DNA of 64,000 nucleotides from Andalucia godoyi And28 (taxonomy: Eukaryota > Protista > Jakobida), in NCBI GenBank assembly GCA_009859145.1, contig VRVR01000014.1:251618-315617 (forward strand). Direction: 5' to 3'. The translations under genes were made by a program, and so were the position numbers. A model generated the notes under the pieces. That model did no database searches. It was not told the DNA's origin and saw only the letters and a list, made by a program, of their open reading frames with translations. Below, one piece after another: positions 26,642 to 62,422 of the stretch. Each line of letters starts with the position of its first letter. Positions within the stretch are counted from its first letter, which is position 1.

Positions 26642-27388
26642 TCGAGAACAACCATTTGTGCTGCAGATTGCTGCTGCTCGGAAAGAATAATGTAAAATCA
26701 AAGAAAAATACAGCAACAAAAGACAACGAACAACGAGAAATTAAAAGTCTCCATGGAGAAAAAAAAACACGGCGACTGTAGTCGAACGAAAAAGCAGAAC
26801 TACAGGAGGAGCCAAAAGGGGAAAAAAAAAGGAGTCTGTGCGGAGTGATGCATCTGTGCTGGCGGCACGAGGAGCAGATCCCTCGACCGAACACTGGGGT
26901 CGGTTTTGACTGCTCTGTTGCCAGCCTCGTCCGTTGCCCAATCTCTTTAATCGCCGTGATGCCAAAGCCGCTTACGCAGCAGCACCCCTGCAAACAGCGC
27001 CCTTCGAGCGGTGCTCAAAACCCTAATCCGCCAGCCCGGAACACCCGCGCCCATTCTCCAATCTCCACCTTCTCCCAGTCGCAAAGAGTCACAGCCGGTG
27101 CCGCCGGCCAAGGCTAAGCACACAGCGCAGCCAAGGTTGCTTTTCAATGTGCGGCACTCTCACTACTTTCATACTTGTGGGTGTGGTTGCGAGCTGGACT
27201 GGTTTTAATTTTGGCAGATTTTTTGTTTTTACGACCAGTTGTTTTCTAGGGGCGAGAGTCGATGTCTTTTGGTGACCTCGGACAGGAGAGGCGTATCAGA
27301 ACGAACATATCGGCGCCTCGGGAGGCACGGCAATGCGCTGCAAATAAACAGAAAAAGGAAGAGAAGGACATGGATGATGGGTACTGTA

Positions 27389-44746: not shown

Positions 44747-47700
44747 ATGCTGTCTTCTGCGTTCAGGAATCTTGATCCTCAGCAAACCGGGCGAGTGTCT
44801 GTGCAGGATTTTCAAAAGGCACTTGGGCAGTTTGGCATAAAGTCGGGGATCAATCCGATTCTGCGCAAGTTTCAAACTGAGCAAGGCTCAGTTGCTTATG
44901 GAGACTTTCTGAACTACTTTGATTCGGTCCGCGGCGAGCGCCGAGCAGTCTCCTCCAACAGACCCGCTCAATCTGCTAATCAAATCGTACGTTTTTCTCA
45001 ACACGATCCTTCTTTTTGAAATTTGTAATTTGAATACTCCGACTGTTTACGGTAACACTAATGTGACAACGACGACGATGTTGGTGATAACTGTTGATCT
45101 TCTGTAGAATGCGCGGCTGAAGGAGATTGAAGCGACGATTCCAGAGGCGGCGGAAAGCTCTCCAAGCGCAAACTCGACTCCTAGCAAGCTGCATCGTGTG
45201 CAAAAGCTCTATTCGGACTTGCGGATTGCTCCGGATAGTCCGACTGCCCTCCAAGCGCTGTTTGCGGTGCACGTGTCTCCTTCTCCTTCTTCTTCTTCTT
45301 CTTCTTCAGCTTCAATTCCTCCCCCTCCCCATTCTTCTTCCGGGAAGCCTGGGTCTGAGGGCGCCAATGGGAATGGCAATGCATCGCTCAGTGTGCACCA
45401 GTCTCAGTCGGCAAACTTTGCCTACTTGTCTACGGGAGCAACACCGAGCGTAGATCCATTGGTTGCAAAGAAGCAGCGGATAGGGAATCTTCTGCGGAAC
45501 ATGGACGCGGAAGGCACGGGATCGGTTCCAGTGTCTGAGTTCAAGATTTCCCTCGAGACGGTCGGGATTGACCCGTCTTCAGAGCGCGTGCAGCGCATGA
45601 TGAAGCAGTCCATCGAGCCGAGCATCGCTGCCGCCTTGCCCTCATCCTCCGCCTCGCCGTCGTCGTTGTCGTTGTCGTCGTCCTCATCGACAAGAAGTAA
45701 TGTTGACTATGTCAAGTTTCTTGCGTTGGTGGATTCGGCATCGGAGCTGGAAGACACTTCGATCAGAAGACCTGTTGCCAAGCACAACATCGAGTCTGTT
45801 GAAGAGCGTGTGCCGGGAAAACCCCGACGACACGGTTCTGCGACACCGCTCTCGTCTCCAAATCCGCTCAATGACGAAACTCCTGTCGTTTTCCGGCCGT
45901 CGAGAAGGCTTGTGGATGTCGAGGGGTATGCAGCAGAGAGTTGCGAAGAAAGGGACGTATTTCAGGGCGCTCATAGAAGAAAGATTCCGCAAAGCCAGTC
46001 CTCGACGCTAGAAGGAGATGATCATGTGATTCGCACTTCCGGAAAGCGTGGTGTAGTGAGAGCGAACTATTTCAAGTTCCTTGACTCGGAAGATTCGCCG
46101 TGGAATGTTCCAGATGCAATTCATGAAGACATGGAGATTCGCAAGGTGCGTGAGATTGTTGCTTCCAAGCTTGATTATTCCAAAGCCAATATCAGCAATC
46201 TGTTCCGAGAATTTGACGAAAATGGCGATGGCGTGATCTCTGTGGATGAGTTTAGAAACGGACTGCAGTCTTTGGGAGTCCACCTGCCGGAAGACAGGTT
46301 TCAGGTGCTTGTCAAGAAGACCGACAGAGACGGTGACGGAGAAATTGATTTTGGCGAGTTTGTGCAAGTGATGAAGTACCACGGTGGCAGTGGCGGTGAG
46401 ATTTCAGAAGACCCGTTCGCAAAGCAAGCTTCCTCGCTGAAAAGACAGGCCTCGATTCGCATCATGCAGCGAGAGTCCAGCATGAAGGACATCATCCAAG
46501 GAAAGCCAGTGGAAGAGCTTGCAAACGGTTCCGACGCCGACTATGGTACTAATGATAACGATTCTGCGGCCCCGTCTGGCACATCTGGCGCTTCTGTTGT
46601 CCGAAGAGGGCCTGTTTCAAAGACATTTGCGACTTCCACATCCGATGTGCAAGATAGAAAGGAACTAGAGGCCTCTGTAAGAAGAGATCGCCGTCTGCGA
46701 GACAAAATTTGCAAGGCAATTTTCGAAAAGAACCCCGGCACGTCCATCCGCGATCTGTTCCGTGCATTTGATGCTGACAAGAACGGACTGATTGATCATG
46801 AGGAATTCCGCAGGGGATTGAAGAGCGCAGGAGTCGATTTGACCATTAATGAGTTCGAGCGATTGGTTCACAATGTGGGAAAGCAAGAGCGCGATGGTGA
46901 AATCAGCTACACGGAATTTGCGTCATTAATGGGTCTTGATGAAGTGCCTGCGGGTGCCACGCTGAATGCTGGAGATACTAGCGAGGATGCTGTTAGCAAT
47001 GGGTACCGCGGAGTCAAGCATTTTGGCAATACACCAGACCATATGCAGTCTTCCATCTACGAGCATCAGGAGGTGCAGCGGCTCACTCCTGCACAGCGAC
47101 ACGGTATTGTGCTTCGCAAGAAGTTGACTGAAAAGCTGGATGCTTTGGGGAAAACGGCTACGGAAGTCTTTTTGGAACTGGATGCCGACAGGTCGGGCCT
47201 CTTGTCTGCGGAGGAAATCACCAGTGGATTTGGCAAGTACGGTCTCAAACTGTCCCATGAAGATGTGGATCAAATTGTGGAACGCTGCGATCCAGAGGGT
47301 TCTGGAAAGATTACTGTGTCTGATATTGCAGCATATTTGGCCCTTGAAACGGCTGGCCCTGCGACTGGGACGAATCCCTCGAAGCTTCAACGCTCATTGT
47401 CGAACATGCACCGTATTTCCAAAGAATCTTCCGAAGTTCAAAAAGAGCGTGGTTTGTTCAACCAGATCCGCCAAAAATTCTCCGAGCGTTCCACATCTGC
47501 TCGCCGACTGTTCATGGACCTGGACATAAATCACGATGGAGAGCTTTCTCGGGAGGAGTTTGCGGATGGTCTGTTGCGCCAGGGTCTGAATTTGTCCAGT
47601 GCTGAAATCGATTTTGTGTATCGACGCTGCGATGCAGACCAGTCCGGTACCGTTGATCTTTCGGAATTCCAACGAGTGTTCGACGGAGTTGTTAGTGGCG

Positions 47701-49877
47701 AGTCCGCGAAATCAAGCACCGTCAATGCTGCGGGTGGGAGTGTAGACTACTCACGGGTTCCTTTACAGATGCGATCGCATTTTGACAATGGCGGCTGGAC
47801 GTCCGAGATGGCTACTCCGATGGTCCAGAGTCGACACGTTGACACGCGGCTCTTTGAGAAGCGAATGTTTGGGGATGACGACGACGCAGCGTCGTCGGTG
47901 GACATGTCTTCGGACCATGGCGGTCCTGGTGGTGACGACAGTCACTCAGTGGTGTCTCAAGAATCACGGTCGACTGGTTCAAACACTTTCCACCAGTTTT
48001 TGCAGCAACCGCTGTCTTCCGGGGATGCAAGCTTACCTTCATCGTTTGCTTTCAAGCCTCGCTCGAGTTTTAATCCGGACGTGAATAGTGAGGATGCGTC
48101 GCATGGCTCGAACTCCCAGCACAACAACAGCAACAGCAACAGCAACATCAACGACAGCATCAGCAGCAGCAGCGGCGGCTTGAATATGAGTACGAGTGGC
48201 AGCCGACCGGCAGTATCATGGAACGAGCCTGCAGGACGTGCGCTTCGTTCGTCTCTATTGGATCTTCATTCTGCAGCCCAAATTCGGGAAACGTTTCGCA
48301 TTTTTGATCGCAATCGAAACGGCAAGATTGCAAGAACTGATTTTGAGGCTGCGGTTCGCTCGCTCCTTCACAGTGCGACGGGGCTCACGGACCGCAAGTC
48401 CAAGACGGACAACCTGCTTGTCGAGCGTGCGACGCAGGCGTTTTCGGAAGGACGAGAGGGCGTTGTTGTGGACTATTCCAAGTTTATGCACGCTCTTGAT
48501 CTTTCCAAGCAGCTTTTCGAAGACTCTGCAAGTTTCCAGTCAGGAGCAAACGAGAAGCCGATTATTGACGCGCACCGTACCACTACTGCAAACAGCATCA
48601 TCGCTCACGAAGAGTTTGCAGCTCCCTCTGAACAGGTCCGTGCGCTTGTTTCACCGATGAAGCCTCGTCGGGGACACGACGACCACTTTGACATGCTGCA
48701 TTTCCCATCGGAACGCTCCGAAGTCGATTCGAACCAGTCTCCCAAACCTCAGCGGACCGGGCGTCGAATGGTCACTGCGCCCCGGCAAGACTCCCTTCTT
48801 GGAACCACATTCAAAGAGCTACCGTCAAACTCATCCTCTCCTCCGCCACCACTGCCACCTCCTACTCATAGCCGTTCCAATGCCCAAGCCTCACCGTCCC
48901 AGTCTCTCGGGGTTTTGCCTCTTGCTCCCGAGCAAGTCCCGCGATCGTCGATCCGGGTCTATCATTCCTCTTCTCCTTCTCCTTCTGCGTCTGCGTCTGC
49001 GCCCCGGAATGGTACAGAGTCGCCACGGCCGACGACGGGAACTGCGGGCCAGCAGTCTGCTGTTGGCGAGCAAAAGCTCTTTGCAGCCAAGCGCCGAGCT
49101 CCGATTCCGGACTCTGGTGATCTCTCTGTGAACCTTGTTCGCGGCACAAAGCGAGTTTCGACAGCGACCTCTGAGCCCGAGTCGTCTCGAAAGCTGTTCC
49201 TCTCAAAGAAGCGCGTGGTAGATGCGCCGCAAGAGTCCATTTCTCTCGAGTTTGCAGAAAACACACCGCGAGAACCAGATCGAGGTTCTTCGTTGTCGTC
49301 GTCTTCGGCAATGCAGAAGCAACCGGAAAAGACGCGCAAGATTGATGACCTGATCCGACAGAAGGTATACCAGAACTCGTCGTCGCCACGCCAGGCATTC
49401 AACCGTGTGATTTCCGATCCAAGAAAAGACCGCGTGTCCGTCGAAGATTTGCAACTTGCACTGCGCAACATGAATCTCGAAGTCTCTGCGGCCCAAGTGC
49501 GCCGGGTTGTTCGCGAAGCCAACCGCGGTCGTGCATCCGAAGGACTTACGTATGAGCAATTCTGCAATGGATTCCTCGAACCCACCACCACCACCACAAG
49601 AGGCGCAGGCTCTCCAGCCACTGAAACTGGAGAAAAGTCTCACGTGATGAGGTCCCCGAATGTGTCGCGCCAGGCAGCGTTTTCCGCGCAGAACCACGGA
49701 AACATCCTTGCGCATCACTCGGGGCCGGCAGACCAAGCAGAAAAGACAGTCGAACCACTCAGGCCCGTCGGCCCGTACCACTCTCCCCACTCTCGAGGAA
49801 CTGTCTACTCCTCTCCATCGGCTCGCGCCCGCGGTTCTCCACGCTCCTCGGGCGACATTATCGCATGGAGAGAATGA
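44747..49877 (+). CDS. Giant multi-EF-hand protein (1669 aa, EFCAB6-like organisation), two exons: 44747..44986 and 45108..49877
   Basis: About eight EF-hand pairs. Canonical loops include DENGDGVISVDE, DRDGDGEIDFGE, DADKNGLIDHEE, DADRSGLLSAEE, DINHDGELSREE and DADQSGTVDLSE. A GTACGT...TAG intron joins ORFs 44648 and 45198 in frame. Confidence 0.9.
44987..45107 (+). other. Spliceosomal intron in the EF-hand gene (121 nt)
   Basis: GTACGT donor, CACTAAT branch-like site, CTTCTGTAG acceptor; phase 0. Confidence 0.85.
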
Positions 49878-53432: not shown

Positions 53433-56400
53433 CTAGCTTCGGTATCGAGAAGATCGACCTCGATAATCGGAACGGTAGTCTCTTCGGTCGTCTCTCCGAT
53501 CTTCGTTTCGTTCATTCCGGCGATCCTCCTTTCGCTCCTCTGATACTCGATCACTTCCACGGTGATCATCCTTCCGGTCGTCCTTGCGGTCGTCTTTGCG
53601 GTCATCCTTGCGGTCATCCTTGCGGCCGTCCTTGCGGTCATCTTTCCGGTCGTCCTTGCGGTCATCTTTCCGGTCATCTTTCCGGTCGTCTTTGCGGTCA
53701 TCCTTGCGGCCATCCTTGCGGTCATCTTTCCGGTCGTCCTTGCGGTCGTCCTTGCGGTCATCCTTGCGGTCGTCCTTGCGGTCATCCTTGCGGTCGTCCT
53801 TGCTGCGATCATCTCGGCGGTCATCTCGGCGGTCATCCCTGCCACGATCACTGCGTCGCTCTCGCTCTCGCTCAGTTTCGCGCTCGGCCTCTCGGGGTCT
53901 TTCAGGTTCACGGTAATCGGTTCGTCGTCGTTTGGCAGCTCGATCCCCTGCATCATCTCGATCACGTTTTCGCGATGCAGTATCGTCTCCACCGGCTTCA
54001 CGACTGTCTGTTTCACGTCGATCACGATCACCACTACGGTCACGATCACGGTCGCGAAAAGACGACTCGGTTGAACGATGGTTACGTATAGATCGCTTTT
54101 CCGCATCCGAACCAGCCGCAGAAACAACAGGAACGGGAGCAGGAACAGGAGTGGGAGCGGGAGCGGGAGCAGGAAGGAGCAGGAGCGGCACCCGTAGCCG
54201 AAGCTCGTGTGGACGAGATGGAGGATGAATGCACAGGCTGGTCAAACTGATGGCTCTTGGGAGTTTCCAAGGAGACACCCAGGAGCTGCAAACAGCGTTC
54301 TGCTGCGAGTTGGATATCTCGAGAATATGCGCCCTTGGAGGCGTCGTGACAGCAATGCCGAACCGCAGCATTCAGCTCGCCAAACACGGACCCACAGTGT
54401 ACCCAGACAATGTTGGGAGGGAGGGCTGAAGAACTTTTCAGCACTCCTGAAGCCAGTGGTTTCGTTCGGTCGCGATGGATGGTCGTCTGAACGTCCCGAA
54501 CCGCTTCGGCAAGGCCTGCAAGCACATGCGTCGCGGCGCGCACTCGAGGCCATCCTGCAGAAGAGTGCAAGAAAGGGACCAATACTGCTGCAATGCGAGA
54601 AACTGCGAGAACTCCAAGCAGAAAGTTCGAAACTCCGCAATGGGGGCTTGCATTCTCGGAGAGCTGCTCCTCTTCCTCTTCCAGAAGAGCAAACACGTCG
54701 TCATGCGACTGCGATGCCATATCTTGCCAGTCATCTCGGCCGAAAGCACACAAAAAGGCCTGCGTCTCCCATCGGCCACCAAAGATGCCGCGAACAAACT
54801 CGCCAGCAAACCAAGAAAGAGCACGCGCCTCGTCAGGAACGGCAACTTGAATACCGGCGCCCACTACATAATGAGCTACCGGCTCAATCATATTTCGCAA
54901 AACACGCAACAGGGAAGACTTTTCCCAAGAAGACTCCCGCCATCCAGCGAGCAAGAAGCGGGCCGAAAACACTGCGTCTGCAACCGAAAAGAGGGCACGA
55001 AGAAGGATGTGCCTTCCGTAAAACTGAGGTTTAAGTACCATGCCATTATGCACCGAGAAGAACGAACCGAGCATCGAGTATCGTGTGCGGATACGAATCG
55101 TGTCCATCGCAACAGTCTTCCCCATTCCAGCAAGAAACGAATGGGACGTGGCCCCATCCGAAAGCACAACATCGGATGTCTTGAAGCGCCAAAAAACACG
55201 AATGATTTCCGCAAGAGACGCATCAACACCAAGAACCTCTGCATCCGCATCGGCAATCTCCGTGGATGTCCAACTGGCAACAAGATCGGCATTCTTGTCT
55301 TCCAGGCGACCCGACAGGCGAACCTGTTCCATTGCAGCGCATATGACAAGCACAAGTGAATTCGCCAGTGCATTCAGTCCATTCAGGGAGACTGTCGATG
55401 CTGATTCAGACGACTGTACTATCGCAACCTGGTGCTTGGCAACCAGCTGGGAATCCAGGGACGGTGAAATGGCTCCGAATGCCTTCTCCGTCATGGCACT
55501 TGAAAATGCTTCACGGATGGATTCCATGGTGGAAGCATTTTCATTGAGCGCGTAGATAGGAGCTATGGACGTCAGCAAGAATGGTCCAAACCTCACCCAC
55601 TCTTCCACAGTCATGTAGAACGTCAAAAAATCAACCAATACGTGAATTCCCGAGCGAAGCTCGTCAATCTTGAGACACACACTATGGGCAAGAGAGGAGC
55701 CACCGCGATCCAAAAGAGAGGTGATGTGTGCACGATAGCTGAAGATCCACTCGGAGAGAATGCGAAATCCAACACCTTTTGTCCACTGCTGCACCAGAAT
55801 ATTTTCCGCTGTTGTGGAATCCACATTTTCACGAGGACCTGCATTGGCGGCACCAGCAGCAGCCGCCGCCGTCACCGCCTCGGCGGACTCCTCAGCGATG
55901 CCGTTCTCCGTTTCCGTATTCTTAGTATCGCCATCCCCACCTTCTTCTCCATTTCCCGCCATTTCTGCATCCTTCGCTGCCTCATTTCCCTCTTCTACTA
56001 TGGCCTCTGCTTCTGCGTCGACTTCTGCGTTCTCATTCTCCTCATCTTGTCCGTCATCATCCTGATCCTGATCATCGTCTTCAGCTTGCGCGCCAGCCCC
56101 AGAATCGTCGTCAACGTCGACTGTTCGAGACTTCCGCGACGAAAATGCTGAAGACAACGATAACTTGCCAACCGAAGAAGAAACGATCTGCGCTCGGTGG
56201 TCCGCATACGCCTGGACTCGATTGAGAGTCTCCACATGTTCCAGATGCGCCAGCATCCGGATACACGCGGTAATCAACGGCACTTGTTTCGCCGCATCCG
56301 ATCTCCAAACTTGATGCAAGGTCACGTCAGGTCGTTGCTGAACCAGACAAGCAACAAACAGAGAGGCATTGCGTCGGCGATCGTCATCCTTTTGGCTGCC

Positions 56401-58164
56401 ACTGGACGCTGGACTCCACAGAGGATCATGAGCAACCAGGTGGTCCATCATCGAAACTACATATGATGGCAGGTACCGAAACAGAATGGGCATGGTTTGA
56501 GCAAGCGTTTCACCGTACGCACAAGCATGCGTCCAGACAGCTTGACAGAACGAACCGGGATGCGCGACCGCAATGCCAGTGGTCCACACTTTTCGAGCCA
56601 CCGACAAGGCATCAGGCACAGTCAAAGTCTTCAGCATTTTCCGGATCTTCGAATGCGCAGACGCCAGCATGAACGGAACCATGGGAAACGAAACAAACAG
56701 CTTGTGATAGACAGACAGAAGAGTATCCGTCGTTGTGTCTCGCGAGGCAATTGCAGACATCAGTATTTTAGGATTGCTGGAGACGACCAGCGCGGCGCTG
56801 GACAAGCCAAGAAGCCATTCCACTGTTTTGCCGTCGACTGCCTTCACCGACTCGTGCAGAACTGGAGACGCACCGTCGAACAAGGGTCGCAGAACCACGG
56901 GGAGATTTGAAATTCTCGTCGAGACCATCTCTGGATGGAAAGATGCAGCGACTTTCCAAACAGGATGCATCAGCAACCGCGAAACGATGAGCAGAAATCT
57001 CTTTTCGTCCGCATCGTCTTCCCACGAAAGCGTATTCATCGACTTCATCGCGGGTAACGCATGATGGATCAAAGCAAACAGTACTCTTAGCTGACGATCA
57101 ACGGAAGAGTCTTCCAAAGCGAAAGCGTTCCGGATAGATGCAGCAACACTCTCCAAACCCTGCGGTGCTGGATTCTCCATGAAAAGCGCTACGGAACGAT
57201 CGAGCACCAAAGCAGCGCGATCGTCTGTCCATTCTAGCCAGCTTGGCATCGCCTGCTTCTGCCCTTCGCTGGCCTCCAAGACAACAGGAATGCACCCGGA
57301 GATCAGACCCAGGGCAATCTGATCTGCGGAAACGGGCTTTCCACTGATCAACAACGCGCTGTGAGCGCACTCCAAAGCAAATGACGGTGCATACGTTTGC
57401 AGAGACCAAGCGCTGACACACTGCACAAACAAGTTACATCGCAGCAGGACATTTTCCATTACTGCAAAGGGAACTCGGTATTTTGACATCCATTCGAGGA
57501 GAATAGAGCAAACCACGTGTACATCACCGTGTATTCCTCCTTTTTTCAAAGTTGCACTTGCCAGAGAAAGCGCCACAGCGTTCGAAAGCGACGCAAACCC
57601 TCCTCGTGGTAGCGACAAGATGGACTTACTTCGCAGAGCCGCAAATCGACTGGTGCTCTTCGCGATTAGCTCGGACGCTGTTCGAAGTCTGTCCATCAGC
57701 ACTGCTGCAACTTGGTGGTCGGATCCCAGCAACAAATGGCTGGCCTTCACAAAGTCCATTAGCATGACAAGCAGCAGCTTGTGTGTCGCATTCTGTTCGG
57801 AAGACTGTGTCAGAAACGACGTCAATATGGGCGAAATCGATCGGATCGCCGCAATCGCAGTCGAAGCAGGGACAAATGAAAGGAAGCTGTCCAGCGACTG
57901 GTCCGCCCGGCTCGCGTCCAGCTGCACAGTCGCCAAGATCACAAAGGACAAGATGACGGACATGCTTGGAGTCTGTGAAGCTACGGGAGAAATAGGAATC
58001 AGACTCGCAAGCAGTGAAAACAGCGACTTCGAAGGCTGAAGCACTTGACGCAAGGAGACCACATCGGCATCGGTCGCAACTGCGGTGCTTGAAAACAACG
58101 ACTGCAGCAATGCCGCTTGCGCCTTGAAGCTTATCACGCTCTCCACACTCGCCGTCTCACGCAT
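53433..58164 (-). CDS. THOC2: THO complex subunit 2 (divergent), with an apparent 1-nt frameshift at 54174-54175 before the Arg/Asp-rich tail
   Basis: IRKMLKTLT..AHPG..AYG..FRYLPS and RALFSVADAVFSARFL align with THOC2 (AKYIMKRLT..SNPT..KYD..LKYLTS; RCIFSAIDAVYCARFV, recalled). Joining 58164..54175 to 54173..53433 gives 1576 aa. Confidence 0.85.
53566..53837. repeat. 12-bp coding tandem repeat (about 20 copies, DDRK) in the THOC2 tail
   Basis: GGTCRTCYTTKC units directly visible; they create stop-free frames on both strands. Confidence 0.95.
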
Positions 58165-58363: not shown

Positions 58364-61300
58364 TTACGACAGTCCCGAGAGGGATTGAAGAGCGTCACGG
58401 AGGGCACTCACGGCGTCATGGGGCAGGGCGAGGTCCGAGTCGTTCATACAAAACTCGCATGCATGCACAAAGCGATGGACGTGAACTGCCCGGACATGGT
58501 CGTGTTGCAACACCGCCAAGCAGTAATCACCACCGACGGCGTTCTTTTGTCGAATGACGAACTTTAGGTCCTGGTTGATTTGCCTGAACTTCTCATCGTG
58601 CCGAAACAGACGCTCCAGAACAGCAGTCACAAAATCCTGATAGTCTCGTGCAGCAGAACAGAACCGGCGCAGCGATCCCGTGTACACGTCTTTCATCAAT
58701 GCACCGGTAGTGCTCTCCGACTGTGATTCTTGCGGAGGAGGGACGGGTCGGGACCGCTTCGCCATCGGCATGTCGAAAGTGTCGTTCGGATCTTCTAAGA
58801 AGAAGAAGAACGCATTTCGTTCCTTCACAAATCGCTCTCTCCCCCTTTTCACACAGACTGAATCTCGTCTCATGGACGGCGAGTCGCAGTCGACAAAGGT
58901 CTGTGCATTGGCCATGAAGCCTACGCGGGTGCAGCACTGTTTTGACAGCGGATCCTGTTGCAAAAACTCGGAAAATAGGCGCAAAAAGTCACAAGGAGCA
59001 CTGTTCCTGGGAGCAGTGCACTGGAATTCGAAACGCTGAACATCCGTATCAAACGCCCACAACAACTGAATGGTACACTCTTCGCGACACCGATCTCCCT
59101 CGCCAAAGACGGTGACCCTCGTTCCAGTGATTGGATCGGAATCCTTGGATTTCAAAATCCAAAAAGGTGTCTGTGGATGTCGAGCGAGAAAGCTGATGAA
59201 TCTCCAGAAGTGATTTGGAGTAAGTACTGCATCCTGCAATTCCACAGTCGCCGACTTGCTTTGGACGATGCCGACACAGCGAACACAGAATGTCCACTCT
59301 ACGAACTCGGTCGATACGCTTGACGATTCCCAAAAATCCTCGAATAAGGAAGTCGGATAGCAATGCTCGCGATGTTGTTTGGGCTTGGGCCTTGCACTTT
59401 CCACGGACCACTGCGGAAAGAAGAACCTATCCCCAGGAACAGAGTCGCTGCGCACAGGAACAAGAATCCCAAATGATTCTAAAATGTTAAATACACGGTC
59501 GATATCATCCTCAACTTGCTTCTGCTGGGCCGGGGATTTAGAGGACCACGCTGTATCCGAGGCCGACAGCTGAAGATGCCACCACAGGCGCAGCATGTTC
59601 TTCGCACGACATGCGAGCATAATGCCATGGTTCTGCCACAGCGACGCCTCGCTACGAAGCCGCGCAACTTCATTAACCACTTCCCTGGACATGTTCGAAA
59701 AGTCAGCAGCCACAAAATGCGCACAGGCACGAACGAAGGCGTCAGGTCGGATGACAATGACGGATTTGTCTCCGGGGAGAGCAAAGAAGGAACCCAAAGA
59801 AACAAGTTCGTCAAACGACTCTCGTGCTTCCGTTGTATCCTTACAAAACATGCTGAGACCCGGAAACCTTGTGAAAATATCGGACGACAGGACTGTCATC
59901 AAACCTCGTTCGTGCTGCACCACAGATTCGACTAGCAAGTTCTTAAGCCGTATCTTTGGCAGCTTTTTTTGAAAATCTTGAATACAGCCCAGCAAGCATT
60001 TGGCAAACGTTGTGTTGTCCGACAGTTTGTGATTGCACCGTTCCGCCGGGTTGTTTTCCACCATCAGAAACGAATAAGTCGGAGAGCCAACGGACGTTGC
60101 CAGCCGCGGCACATCGATAAAGTTGAACTGCAGCCGCGCAATGTGCTCCAGCAAGATATCCTCCAGCTCTTTCAAAAAGGACGACGCGTCGCAAACCTCA
60201 CTGTTGGCGTGCGTGCCGATGAGCAAAACAGTTGACAGGCACTCCTGTCGTCCGTCGGAGATCTTGGACGATGTGGCGGCTACTGTGGGGGTGTGAACGT
60301 TAATTGCGTGTACTGCTTCGATTTGCTTCAGCCACGAGAGAATCTGTCTGTCGACTGCCGCAGAGAGGGTCCTCTGCTTCCAGGCATCGTGCAAGGACTG
60401 GAGATTGAAGACACACAAGTACATGCACTGCTTGCCAAAAAACAGCGGATCAAACGCTCGAAACACGTTTTGTCCAGCGAAATCGAACACAGACAAAGAC
60501 ACGGTCTCATTCAGCAGTTCTGCCAAGGCAGACTCGACGATGCTGACTGGCTCCGAGTGAGTCACCATCGATGGCCCCGCAGCATATTCTCTGAACGAGC
60601 TTTTTTGTGAATCAGGATCTTGCTCGGCAGTCGACGAAAAGATGGGAGAAGGCTTCGGGGCACGCCTCTTTTGCATGTCTTCCACCAGGGCCACCGGATC
60701 GTCGCCAGTCATCAAGGAGAACGTCTCGTGATGCGCATAACTGTGGTTCCTCGGGATGGCCAGTGCGGCACGGGAGGCCACTCCATTGGCACTCATTCCA
60801 CCGTCACCGTCGCTGCAGTCGTTCGAGCCAGTCTGCTGGTCGTTTTCAGCCCGTGAAGCGTCCAAACTTTCTTGCAAGACTTTCTGATCTGCAAACTGTC
60901 TTCGCACAATCTTGGAAATCAAAGGCTCGCGTGAGTGAATCGGATTCCAAAATGGAGACTCGCTCTTGAGAGACACGTCTACTACGATAATATCGCCCAC
61001 TTCGGTTCTCGAGATTGTCAAGAGAAAGTCGCTACCTCCAGAAGAAAGATTCCGAATGAGACTGGATTTGCCAGCCTCGCTTTCACCCACGACCAGCACG
61101 CGAAACCGCGACGGTCTGCACACTGTCTTCCTGTCAATATCCAGCTTCTCTATGGTTAGTGGCATATCCGCGTGAACGACTGGAAATCCGATCGGTCTAG
61201 CGAAATTCAGAGTCTTCCAAAAATTTGCGTTTGAGTGCTGTCGAATGCCAGGCTCGACAGCCAATTGAACCTCGCGGTTTCCAACGAAAAACCTTGCCTT

Positions 61301-62422
61301 TTGAATTGTCAGATCGAAATCAGGTCCAATGGGGTGCTCATGAAGCCGCCTGGATTTTGAGGACGTTACCGGAAAAGCTCTGCAGTCGAGTCGAACGGAG
61401 CACACCGCAGGCGGAACAACATCGACGACATCCACATCCGGTCGATTTTGCGACCCGCCGATTCCATAAATTCTGTTTTCGTAAGCAACGCATCCAAAGT
61501 CCTTTCGACTCTCAAAGTTCTTATCGTCAAGGAACGGTACGTCAACGGTCCGCCAGGCATCGACTCGCGGCTCATAGATTTCAAACCACGAATCTCGAGC
61601 AGTTCCACCGACGCAGTAGATGAGATCCTGTACAACCACGGCGGAGTGCCGCATATTTGGCTGATTCAACGGACAACACTTGGCCCACCTCCGCGTTCGA
61701 ACATCCCACCTCTCCACGGACGCCAGTGGAGACGATCCACTCCCAGACGCCCCGCCAATCGCATAAATCGAATCGAGAGAGTCGATCGCAACTGCAGCGA
61801 AATGTTCTCTGGGTTCCAGCATGGATGGGCATTCCTGTCGCGATCGAGACGATGGCAATATCAGGCACTCCACAGAGGAATCTGCCGAATCCAGCTCCAG
61901 ATGTGTTCGTCCGCCAAGCACAAGCAAATGGTCCATTCGCTTGAGCACGACGGTGGAGTGACCAGCTCGCGGAGAAATTGGCGAAGAGAAGCGGATGGGA
62001 CGCAACATATTTCCAGAACTCATGTTTCCTGGTTGGAAGTCCTGCAGGAACGACCATGCCTCCACGATTGGCGTAAGCGACGGCGCAGAATCCGGAAGCG
62101 AAACGATTCCACCGCAGCACACAATCTGGTTCCTGAACATGGTGACCGAGTGGTCATACCTGGGAAGAGTGGACGAGGGATCGCTTGGCACGACGACTTT
62201 CCACCACTGCGGGTGTGACTTACCGACCTGCAGGCATTCAATGCTCGAAATCGTCCGGCCTTTCGCTTTGCCACCGACCACGAAAACATTGCCTACGTCA
62301 TCCACGGCGGCACCAAAGTTGGAGCGGCCATAATTTAAAGACGGACCGATTCGAATCCTTCCGTACTCTGCACCCTGAACGCTATCCCACTCCGTGGCGA
62401 TGCGGTCCGTACCAAATGACAT
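58364..62422 (-). CDS. Roco-family protein (1352 aa): six Kelch repeats, Roc GTPase, COR domain, short helical C-terminal domain; no kinase
   Basis: Six Kelch GG motifs (VFVVGG, IVCCGG, LLVLGG, IYAIGG, IYCVGG, IYGIGG); P-loop GESEAGKS (61064..61087); Roc switch II FDFAGQ (60470..60487); G4 GTHAN (60203..60217); COR-like LVSLGSFF..VIVIRPD and ILESFGILVP..RFFFP. ATG at 62422. Confidence 0.88.
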   Translation of the reverse strand: MSFGTDRIATEWDSVQGAEYGRIRIGPSLNYGRSNFGAAVDDVGNVFVVGGKAKGRTISSIECLQVGKSHPQWWKVVVPSDPSSTLPRYDHSVTMFRNQIVCCGGIVSLPDSAPSLTPIVEAWSFLQDFQPGNMSSGNMLRPIRFSSPISPRAGHSTVVLKRMDHLLVLGGRTHLELDSADSSVECLILPSSRSRQECPSMLEPREHFAAVAIDSLDSIYAIGGASGSGSSPLASVERWDVRTRRWAKCCPLNQPNMRHSAVVVQDLIYCVGGTARDSWFEIYEPRVDAWRTVDVPFLDDKNFESRKDFGCVAYENRIYGIGGSQNRPDVDVVDVVPPAVCSVRLDCRAFPVTSSKSRRLHEHPIGPDFDLTIQKARFFVGNREVQLAVEPGIRQHSNANFWKTLNFARPIGFPVVHADMPLTIEKLDIDRKTVCRPSRFRVLVVGESEAGKSSLIRNLSSGGSDFLLTISRTEVGDIIVVDVSLKSESPFWNPIHSREPLISKIVRRQFADQKVLQESLDASRAENDQQTGSNDCSDGDGGMSANGVASRAALAIPRNHSYAHHETFSLMTGDDPVALVEDMQKRRAPKPSPIFSSTAEQDPDSQKSSFREYAAGPSMVTHSEPVSIVESALAELLNETVSLSVFDFAGQNVFRAFDPLFFGKQCMYLCVFNLQSLHDAWKQRTLSAAVDRQILSWLKQIEAVHAINVHTPTVAATSSKISDGRQECLSTVLLIGTHANSEVCDASSFLKELEDILLEHIARLQFNFIDVPRLATSVGSPTYSFLMVENNPAERCNHKLSDNTTFAKCLLGCIQDFQKKLPKIRLKNLLVESVVQHERGLMTVLSSDIFTRFPGLSMFCKDTTEARESFDELVSLGSFFALPGDKSVIVIRPDAFVRACAHFVAADFSNMSREVVNEVARLRSEASLWQNHGIMLACRAKNMLRLWWHLQLSASDTAWSSKSPAQQKQVEDDIDRVFNILESFGILVPVRSDSVPGDRFFFPQWSVESARPKPKQHREHCYPTSLFEDFWESSSVSTEFVEWTFCVRCVGIVQSKSATVELQDAVLTPNHFWRFISFLARHPQTPFWILKSKDSDPITGTRVTVFGEGDRCREECTIQLLWAFDTDVQRFEFQCTAPRNSAPCDFLRLFSEFLQQDPLSKQCCTRVGFMANAQTFVDCDSPSMRRDSVCVKRGRERFVKERNAFFFFLEDPNDTFDMPMAKRSRPVPPPQESQSESTTGALMKDVYTGSLRRFCSAARDYQDFVTAVLERLFRHDEKFRQINQDLKFVIRQKNAVGGDYCLAVLQHDHVRAVHVHRFVHACEFCMNDSDLALPHDAVSALRDALQSLSGLS

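Follow-up and report, generated by a model that had tools for sequence, protein, structure and literature searches.

A Kelch-Roc protein family in the jakobid Andalucia godoyi, with a degenerate G4 motif and a post-Roc region beyond the reach of COR profiles

Introduction

Roco proteins have been studied chiefly through LRRK2, and natural swaps of their sensor repeats and losses of their kinase help to define what the Roc-COR core needs. Rocos in which ANK, TPR or WD40 repeats stand beside the leucine-rich repeats (LRR) or replace them have been documented, as have Rocos with TIR, CARD or death effectors (PMC11378527), and Kelch and WD40 propellers have been reported among the domains flanking the Rocos of Dictyostelium (PMC6320773). 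Here we analyse a gene of the jakobid Andalucia godoyi And28 whose product joins an N-terminal Kelch propeller to a Roc-type G domain. The gene lies in a 64,000-nucleotide stretch of DNA (assembly GCA_009859145.1, contig VRVR01000014.1, positions 251,618 to 315,617 of the forward strand), which we call the window and to which all coordinates below refer. A preliminary description of the gene had read it as a kinase-less Roco protein with a Kelch propeller in place of LRRs, a COR domain and a possible death-fold tail, and had proposed it as a candidate immune receptor. On balance, we favour reading it as a lineage-specific, kinase-less, Roco-like multidomain G protein that acts as a nucleotide-gated dimeric scaffold or switch.

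Results

The gene is carried by the minus strand, as are all of its features described below, where an open reading frame (ORF) runs uninterrupted from 62533 to 58364 and its first ATG, at 62422, opens a protein of 1352 amino acids (aa). According to the ORF list and its translation, the complete coding sequence (58364..62422) comprises 1352 codons and a stop, and an intron is not required. The complete six-blade Kelch propeller that the preliminary description had seen at the N-terminus is confirmed by sequence comparison. Pfam matches Kelch_1 (4.5e-23) and Kelch_6 (3.7e-20) in the 1352-aa protein, and the six-blade profile Beta-prop_ATRN-LZTR1 (Attractin/LZTR1) is covered nearly from end to end, positions 2-287 of its 289 being matched by aa 47-331. 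A PDB search matched the Kelch domains of KLHL20 and KEAP1 at 1e-15 to 1e-28, and six hydrophobic-GG blade motifs can be counted, at aa 46, 100, 166, 219, 267 and 317. The propeller spans aa 25-340 (61403..62350) and is, by prediction, a platform for binding a protein or a ligand. It is followed by a β-rich linker (aa 345-430, 61133..61390) that is kept in all paralogues at 17-34% identity, with V385 and R409 invariant; this linker has no Pfam match, and its strands are predicted in a low-confidence AlphaFold model only.

An exhaustive phmmer search with aa 345-1352 against 1.84 billion representative proteins returned five real homologues, all from Andalucia godoyi: ANDGO_07311, ANDGO_08376 (= KAF0852540.1), ANDGO_05994, ANDGO_01445 and ANDGO_00624. 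Four of these score at E 1e-67 to 1e-78, with 33-35% identity, and the fifth at 1e-10, with 22% identity; no orthologue outside A. godoyi was found among the 1.84 billion proteins. A profile search gave two paralogues only, and word-indexed searches, run with the complete sequence or with aa 345-1352, gave generic Kelch proteins or the query itself and nothing specific. The copies found in this one species are divergent and number at least six, so the family is multi-copy, and the gene would appear to be one of at least six old, divergent paralogues of A. godoyi. The preliminary description had allowed that the architecture might prove to be a widespread, already annotated orthologue; the homologues found are confined to A. 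godoyi, and one of them carries an annotation of Kelch and P-loop NTPase domains.

Kelch followed by Roc, with neither LRR nor kinase, had been claimed for the window protein; the layout holds and recurs in paralogues. By Pfam, P0018 and P0019 (ANDGO_07311, ANDGO_08376) have the full combination of Kelch and Roc. ANDGO_01445 (P0021) has one Kelch repeat and Roc, because its gene model begins at the last blades. Only Roc is recognised in ANDGO_05994, whose gene model begins just before Roc, and in ANDGO_00624, which has a long N-terminal region without a Kelch match. ANDGO_07311, ANDGO_05994 and ANDGO_01445 form a younger subgroup, with 64-79% mutual identity, from which the window protein stands apart at 31-35%. 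Its Kelch domain is 33-37% identical to those of the paralogues, as compared with 36-40% in Roc and 26-34% in the region after Roc. The propeller has thus not diverged more than the other parts, and at this resolution it does not bear the mark that a fast-evolving sensor would be expected to show. In the window protein as a whole, Pfam finds no LRR family at E<=1, no Pkinase (nor is a protein kinase among the PDB matches) and no NB-ARC or NACHT match that would indicate a STAND core; its sole NTPase is Ras-like.

The preliminary description had placed a Roc domain after the propeller by the motifs GESEAGKS, DFAGQ and GTHAN, and the assignment of a Roc-type G domain is confirmed by profile comparison, with the motifs where they had been seen. 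The Pfam Roc profile scores 34.9 bits (cut-off 27; 2e-8), its coverage being limited to aa 639-704. Once the insert described below had been removed, a PDB search gave the Methanosarcina Roco 4WNR and LRRK2 Roc as best matches, and aligned G1, G3 and 'LIGTHAN' with G1, G3 and 'LVGTHLD' of LRRK2. The six-member family profile matched LRRK2 Roc at 3.3e-9 and 4WNR at 1.9e-6 in the PDB, the best non-Roco matches (IFT27, Rabs) standing at 2e-4 or worse, with every Rab some five orders of magnitude behind LRRK2 Roc. Against an alignment of Pfam-positive Roc-COR-A proteins, hhalign returned 99.4% probability across the whole G domain. The domain is laid out in two parts. The N-terminal part (aa 431-500, 60923..61132), which the family profile aligns with G1 and switch I of LRRK2 Roc, contains the P-loop GESEAGKS (aa 446-453, 61064-61087) and the switch I Thr within 'TEVGD' (aa 473-477), a residue that is invariant in the family. 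The C-terminal part (aa 626-820, 59963..60547), supported by Pfam Roc and hhalign, contains G3 DFAGQ (aa 647-651, 60470-60484) on strand β3, in the context 'SVFDFAGQ', the G4 position GTHAN (aa 736-740, 60203-60217) and a G5-like 'VENNP'. Residues G446, G451, K452, S454, T473, E474 and V475 are identical in the six family members. The same holds for the Lys and Ser of the P-loop, for the Thr of switch I and for DxxGQ; with these intact, the predicted chemistry of nucleotide binding and hydrolysis appears to be preserved.

Between the two parts lies the low-complexity insertion that had been noted between P-loop and switch II. It is about 125 residues long (about aa 501-625, 60548..60922), disordered and rich in S, A and D, and occupies the β2-β3 loop of Roc, between strand β2, which follows switch I 'TEVGD', and β3 with G3. 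Its pLDDT (predicted local distance difference test) stays below 35 in the AlphaFold model, and the paralogues, all of which have the insert, share 17-26% identity within it. By hhalign, the nearest Roc relatives outside Andalucia have an insert in the same loop. In these Roc-COR-A proteins (ORFs of the metagenomic loci L001, L004, L010 and L013, and P0033, KAJ3116231.1 of the chytrid Nowakowskiella), it stands between a switch I 'STEGIDVH' and a G3 'SVWDFAGQ'; the L013 ORF has two Roc-COR units in tandem.

The G4 motif is degenerate, a point that the preliminary description had not remarked. The Asp of the [NT]KxD motif is missing from all six family members, the window protein having GTHAN, which aligns to LRRK2 'GTHLD', and the paralogues GTHGG, GTHCA, GTHGN, GTHGN and GTRGS; the nearest relatives outside Andalucia retain GTHKD, and LRRK2 has THLD. 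In GTPases, this Asp hydrogen-bonds the guanine base. Its change to Asn in Ras-like proteins leads to a preference for xanthine nucleotides, and some TRAFAC NTPases that have lost the G4 motif use ATP. Since the G4 Asp is lost, an altered base specificity is predicted, in which ATP or xanthosine triphosphate (XTP) would be tolerated, or else a weak affinity for nucleotides. The family would then combine a working phosphate-binding and hydrolysis site with a relaxed or changed base specificity.

The ~400 aa that follow Roc (aa 821-1215, 58778..59962) are conserved within the family, the identity range given above being that to the four paralogues P0018-P0021, and their position and size are those of a COR domain. 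COR had indeed been claimed here. Pfam finds neither COR-A nor COR-B in any of the six proteins or in their consensus, even at E<=10, and neither phmmer nor a family profile search finds a COR in the PDB. With hhalign, the post-Roc region compared with single sequences and small reference sets gave P ~0.4. We also assembled a reference from five bacterial Roco loci, retrieved by a bacterial-genome scan with bona fide Roc-COR sequences, one of which has strong COR-A (1e-38) and COR-B (6e-35) matches. The family post-Roc profile matched this bacterial COR profile at P=0.13, while a positive control with equally small profiles, three eukaryote-like COR sequences against the same bacterial profile, gave P=5.9e-5. 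The structural models are poor as well. AlphaFold2 was given the six-sequence family alignment, from which true COR sequences were kept out to avoid a bias towards COR, and reached a pLDDT of 38 for aa 345-1352 and of 43 for aa 800-1352, both of low confidence. A Foldseek search with the model that lacks Roc (aa 800-1352) finds no Roco structure. Even the more favourable home-made score given next is tempered, as two registers are possible and its shuffle null is liberal. The claim that COR follows Roc was not confirmed: Pfam, PDB profile and hhalign searches did not recognise one, and in hhalign the control pair was detected.

Other comparisons lean the opposite way. Against COR-A of a single canonical bacterial Roco (L020), the hhalign result is marginal (P=0.045). 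A home-made profile-profile Smith-Waterman comparison with the post-Roc regions of Pfam-positive Roc-COR-A proteins scored 81.1, where column shuffles gave 59.0 +/- 5.9, with all 100 of them below the observed value, and the reversed profile gave 65.1. By eye, the region can be followed through the motifs 'LPKxxLxNL...', 'LVxLGSFF...IVxRPDxFxxxCA', 'LxxxGxxVP...FFPQW' and 'VRCVG...HFWRFIxFL', an order that resembles that of the LRRK2 COR, and which we take as a lead and not as a test. Both poor models predict a first half rich in helices and a second half of strand and helix. With the Roc-containing model, the top Foldseek matches are to the Roc-COR-kinase-WD40 half of LRRK2 (E 5.4e-5, over 545 alignment columns including gaps), and LRRK2 provides 9 of the 14 top matches. 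This signal probably comes from Roc, because Rocos are absent from the matches of the Roc-free model, which are weak and of START/Bet v 1-like and lipocalin type; the low pLDDT makes all of the Foldseek results weak. If the post-Roc region is a COR, it would be an unusually divergent one.

The protein ends in a tail (aa 1216-1352, 58367..58777) that is partly helical by prediction and weakly conserved. Of the helical module of roughly 95 aa described earlier, what stands is a C-terminal region of ~135 aa for which helices are predicted. Its fold differs between the two low-confidence models, one giving only helices (4-5, one of them of 34 residues) and the other helices and a β-hairpin, and no link to a death fold emerged. 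No Death, CARD, DED or PYD domain is found in the tail by Pfam at E<=10 or by profile-level searches of the PDB, and we rejected the death-fold tail for want of any signal in either. The only Pfam matches in the tail are below threshold, to SH2 (0.034) and DUF6339 (0.094). The SH2 match (aa 1280-1317), over 'KFVIRQKNAVGGDYCLAVLQHDHVRAVHV', scores 14.7 bits (cut-off 21) in Pfam, and the SAP/SHIP2 SH2 domains in the PDB are matched at E ~1; the SH2-like stretch 'QDLKFVIRQKNAVGGDYCLAVLQHDHVRAVHVHRF' lies at 58463-58573 (aa 1284-1320). We set an SH2 tail aside as improbable: the match is below threshold, by eye the sequence before it is too short for the first helix, and, again by eye, the aligned tail of P0019 (ANDGO_08376) does not retain the FLVR-type Arg. 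The match is probably due to chance.

Within the family, conservation is lowest in the tails. That of the window protein is about 20% identical to those of the paralogues, its likeness to P0019 being confined to the last ~30 aa, and tail length ranges from 118 to 488 aa across paralogues. ANDGO_05994 has a different long tail without any significant match. In ANDGO_01445, an extra C-terminal module of ~330 aa gives a sub-threshold match to PNP_UDP_1 (Pfam E 0.0034) and a colinear, two-segment match to the MTA/SAH nucleosidase 4QEZ over its conserved motifs. This module may serve its Kelch-Roc protein as an output domain of the nucleosidase type.

Outside A. godoyi, a metagenome scan returned relatives at the level of Roc only, with 24-30% identity, and a bacterial-genome scan with the family profile returned none. 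Among the other loci retrieved, four contigs of Pirellula, Prosthecobacter and Verrucomicrobiaceae metagenome-assembled genomes (L016-L019) encode LRR-Roc-COR-A proteins with a weak, below-cut-off C-terminal TIR_2 match (E 2.4e-5 to 1.2e-3), a Roco layout of a defence-like kind; L018 has, in addition, an FGE-sulfatase domain at its N-terminus. A 1719-aa ORF on metagenome contig Ga0099799_10449 (L012:2940-8096) combines LRR, Roc, a long unassigned region and a trypsin-like peptidase.

The gene body is colinear with a paralogue locus on A. godoyi contig VRVR01000031.1, to which aa 11-1189 are aligned by one tblastn match in one frame, and that locus is close to the window in G+C content and codon usage. 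There (P0019, L015:9845-10000), the tblastn match begins 156 nt upstream of the annotated start and the record is marked 'partial', so the annotated N-terminus of this paralogue may be too short. On the 3' side, 200 bp downstream of the gene, lies a 1360-aa ORF (54082-58164, minus strand) with an acidic low-complexity stretch and no Pfam match, and on the 5' side, 455 bp upstream, a gene for protein-L-isoaspartate methyltransferase. No second family member was found elsewhere in the 64-kb window, and tandem paralogues there were rejected. The window as a whole is compact eukaryotic DNA (G+C 44-55%), with mostly intronless housekeeping genes on alternating strands, including those for a NatA auxiliary subunit, Nuf2, an SPX-EXS protein, RPN5, EMP70, a USP peptidase, FNIP and an enoyl-CoA hydratase. 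Because of this alternation of strands, a trypanosomatid origin was rejected. This gene style agrees with the published A. godoyi genome, which is ~20 Mb, compact and nearly intronless (PMC7050145). An SRP RNA gene (26828-27112, minus strand) is recognised at full length by Rfam Metazoa_SRP with 90.5 bits, and no tRNA genes were found in the whole window. On the plus strand, the ORF at 45198-49877 encodes 1559 aa with numerous paired EF-hands (EF-hand_7 6e-55), unusually long for a protein of this type.

Discussion

We regard it as reasonably probable that the window protein is a lineage-specific, kinase-less, Roco-like multidomain G protein working as a nucleotide-gated dimeric scaffold or switch. 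In this mechanism, the ~400 aa after Roc would be a COR that has diverged very far, or else a region that takes over its function, and would hold two Roc domains together; the protein would then switch as a dimer under nucleotide control, as other Rocos do. The nucleotide state would change the relation between a partner bound to the propeller and the variable C-terminal tail, and the S-rich insert is likely to be a regulatory loop. Its cellular role is most likely in intracellular signalling or scaffolding.

The most substantial competitor, to which we give a clear minority of our belief, is that the protein is not a Roco at all, being a Kelch propeller fused to a small, Roc-like G domain with unrelated, family-specific domains behind it, perhaps one helical and one an SRPBCC/START-like α/β fold, to which the dimer mechanism of COR would not apply. 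This would account for the negative outcome of every calibrated COR test beside a positive control that was itself positive, and for the best non-LRRK2 Foldseek matches of both models, which are DR_A0006, Bet v 1/START-like and lipocalin folds over ~130-200 columns (1vjh with a TM of 0.57 and E 0.085 for the Roc-containing model, and 3ggn with E 6e-3 for the model without Roc). Those matches are weak, however, and come from low-confidence models, while the Roco-like reading is favoured by the family definition, in which COR follows Roc, by the position and size of the region, by the COR-like order of its motifs by eye and by the ad hoc profile score, which speaks for a divergent COR. Far less probable, and in our view hardly to be expected, is a mitochondrion-associated G protein with a Miro-like role at the organelle. 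The idea stems from the GenBank name of the paralogue KAF0852540.1, 'mitochondrial Kelch and P-loop NTPase domain-containing protein', a name that apparently derives from the in-silico mitochondrial proteome of the genome paper (PMC7050145). That prediction is computational and its authors caution about false positives (PMC7050145), and the term was not found in the supplements of that paper that were searched. Moreover, the N-terminus of the window protein enters blade 1 directly, with no presequence recognisable by eye, and Pfam finds neither Miro-type EF-hands nor a second GTPase domain.

The preliminary description had proposed the protein as a candidate immune receptor. In its fuller form, this reading would make it an NLR-like receptor of innate immunity or cell death, whose propeller would sense a pathogen-derived or modified-self ligand, with Roc as the switch, the tail as effector and the paralogues as a small repertoire. 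The family is lineage-specific and multi-copy, its C-terminal tails differ, and the paralogue P0021 may carry a nucleosidase module of the PNP_UDP type by the Pfam and 4QEZ matches given above. Domains of the PNP_UDP type serve as effectors in fungal NLRs and in bacterial defence. Some of the bacterial relatives that were retrieved through the Roc motif are LRR-Roc-COR-TIR proteins, and a role as immune receptors has been proposed for the LRR-ROCO proteins of brown algae (PMC3341825, PMC11378527). On the other hand, Pfam and PDB searches with the window protein turned up no recognised effector, whether death, CARD, TIR or another, its Kelch domain has not diverged further than Roc or the post-Roc region, the copies found number only about six and are not clustered in the window, and the nucleosidase match is below threshold and in another paralogue. 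We therefore consider such a receptor unlikely. No test run here supports an immune role, which is speculation. We are equally doubtful of the broader proposal that the Kelch-Roc family is a protist counterpart of NLR- and Avs-type receptors, in which sensing would fall to the propeller, a Roc switch with relaxed base specificity would replace the STAND ATPase, and output modules could be exchanged at the C-terminus, with a helical tail in the window protein and a domain resembling nucleosidases in ANDGO_01445. Should it be true, a modular design of repeat, switch and effector would have arisen on a Ras-like scaffold in Discoba, and if the variable tails are effectors, the family would be a data point on the origin of modular immune-like receptors.

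The family proteins were already in public databases, one of them annotated with Kelch and P-loop NTPase, and what we offer here is a correction of that annotation, which should read Kelch and Roc-type GTPase, and not the discovery of a new system. Of most interest are the absence of the G4 Asp throughout the family and a COR that is either extremely divergent or replaced. Jakobida are almost without functional annotation, and a Roc-type G domain has now been shown in one of them. The family provides three natural experiments, in having Kelch in place of LRRs, in the family-wide loss of the Asp that reads guanine and in a post-Roc region that lies beyond COR profiles.

Comparison with known systems

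The propeller is of the BTB-Kelch/KLHDC type known from KLHL20 and KEAP1, with six blades and the typical GG and W blade motifs. Unlike the proteins of that type, the window protein has no BTB, BACK or F-box domain and therefore shows no tie to cullin ligases. For the G domain, LRRK2 and the Roco kinases of Dictyostelium give the best structural and sequence matches, down to the alignment of GTHAN with LRRK2 GTHLD, but the window protein lacks their kinase and their LRR, ankyrin or armadillo repeats, and its propeller is N-terminal and not C-terminal. The nearest Roc relatives outside Andalucia are the split-Roc proteins (L001, L004, L010, L013 and KAJ3116231.1), which share the 'xSVxDFAGQ' form of G3 and the insert in the same loop. 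They differ in their canonical GTHKD G4, in a COR-A that Pfam detects and in the absence of Kelch, and the similarity is limited to Roc, at the 24-30% identity of the metagenome scan.

The kinase-less Rocos, such as bacterial and archaeal LRR-Roc-COR proteins (the Roco of Chlorobium tepidum among them), human MASL1/MFHAS1, TORNADO1 of plants and the LRR-ROCO proteins of brown algae, resemble the window protein as large multidomain proteins with a Roc core, N-terminal repeats and no kinase. The Roc signature of the window protein is closest to those of LRRK2 and the archaeal Roco, and insertions within Roc have been reported in brown-algal ROCOs too (PMC11378527). The window protein departs from this group in having Kelch in place of LRRs, a COR that sequence does not detect and a G4 without its Asp, and its family is, so far as found, confined to one jakobid. 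The architecture had been thought undescribed, and in part this holds: our literature search found no paper on a Kelch-Roc protein without LRR and kinase, nor on any Roco in jakobids, Andalucia included, and Kelch is not mentioned in the text and supplements of PMC7050145 that were searched. Since Kelch domains in Rocos (PMC6320773) and the swapping of their repeats (PMC11378527) are already documented, however, the Kelch-Roc architecture is a variant of the Roco design and not a new class.

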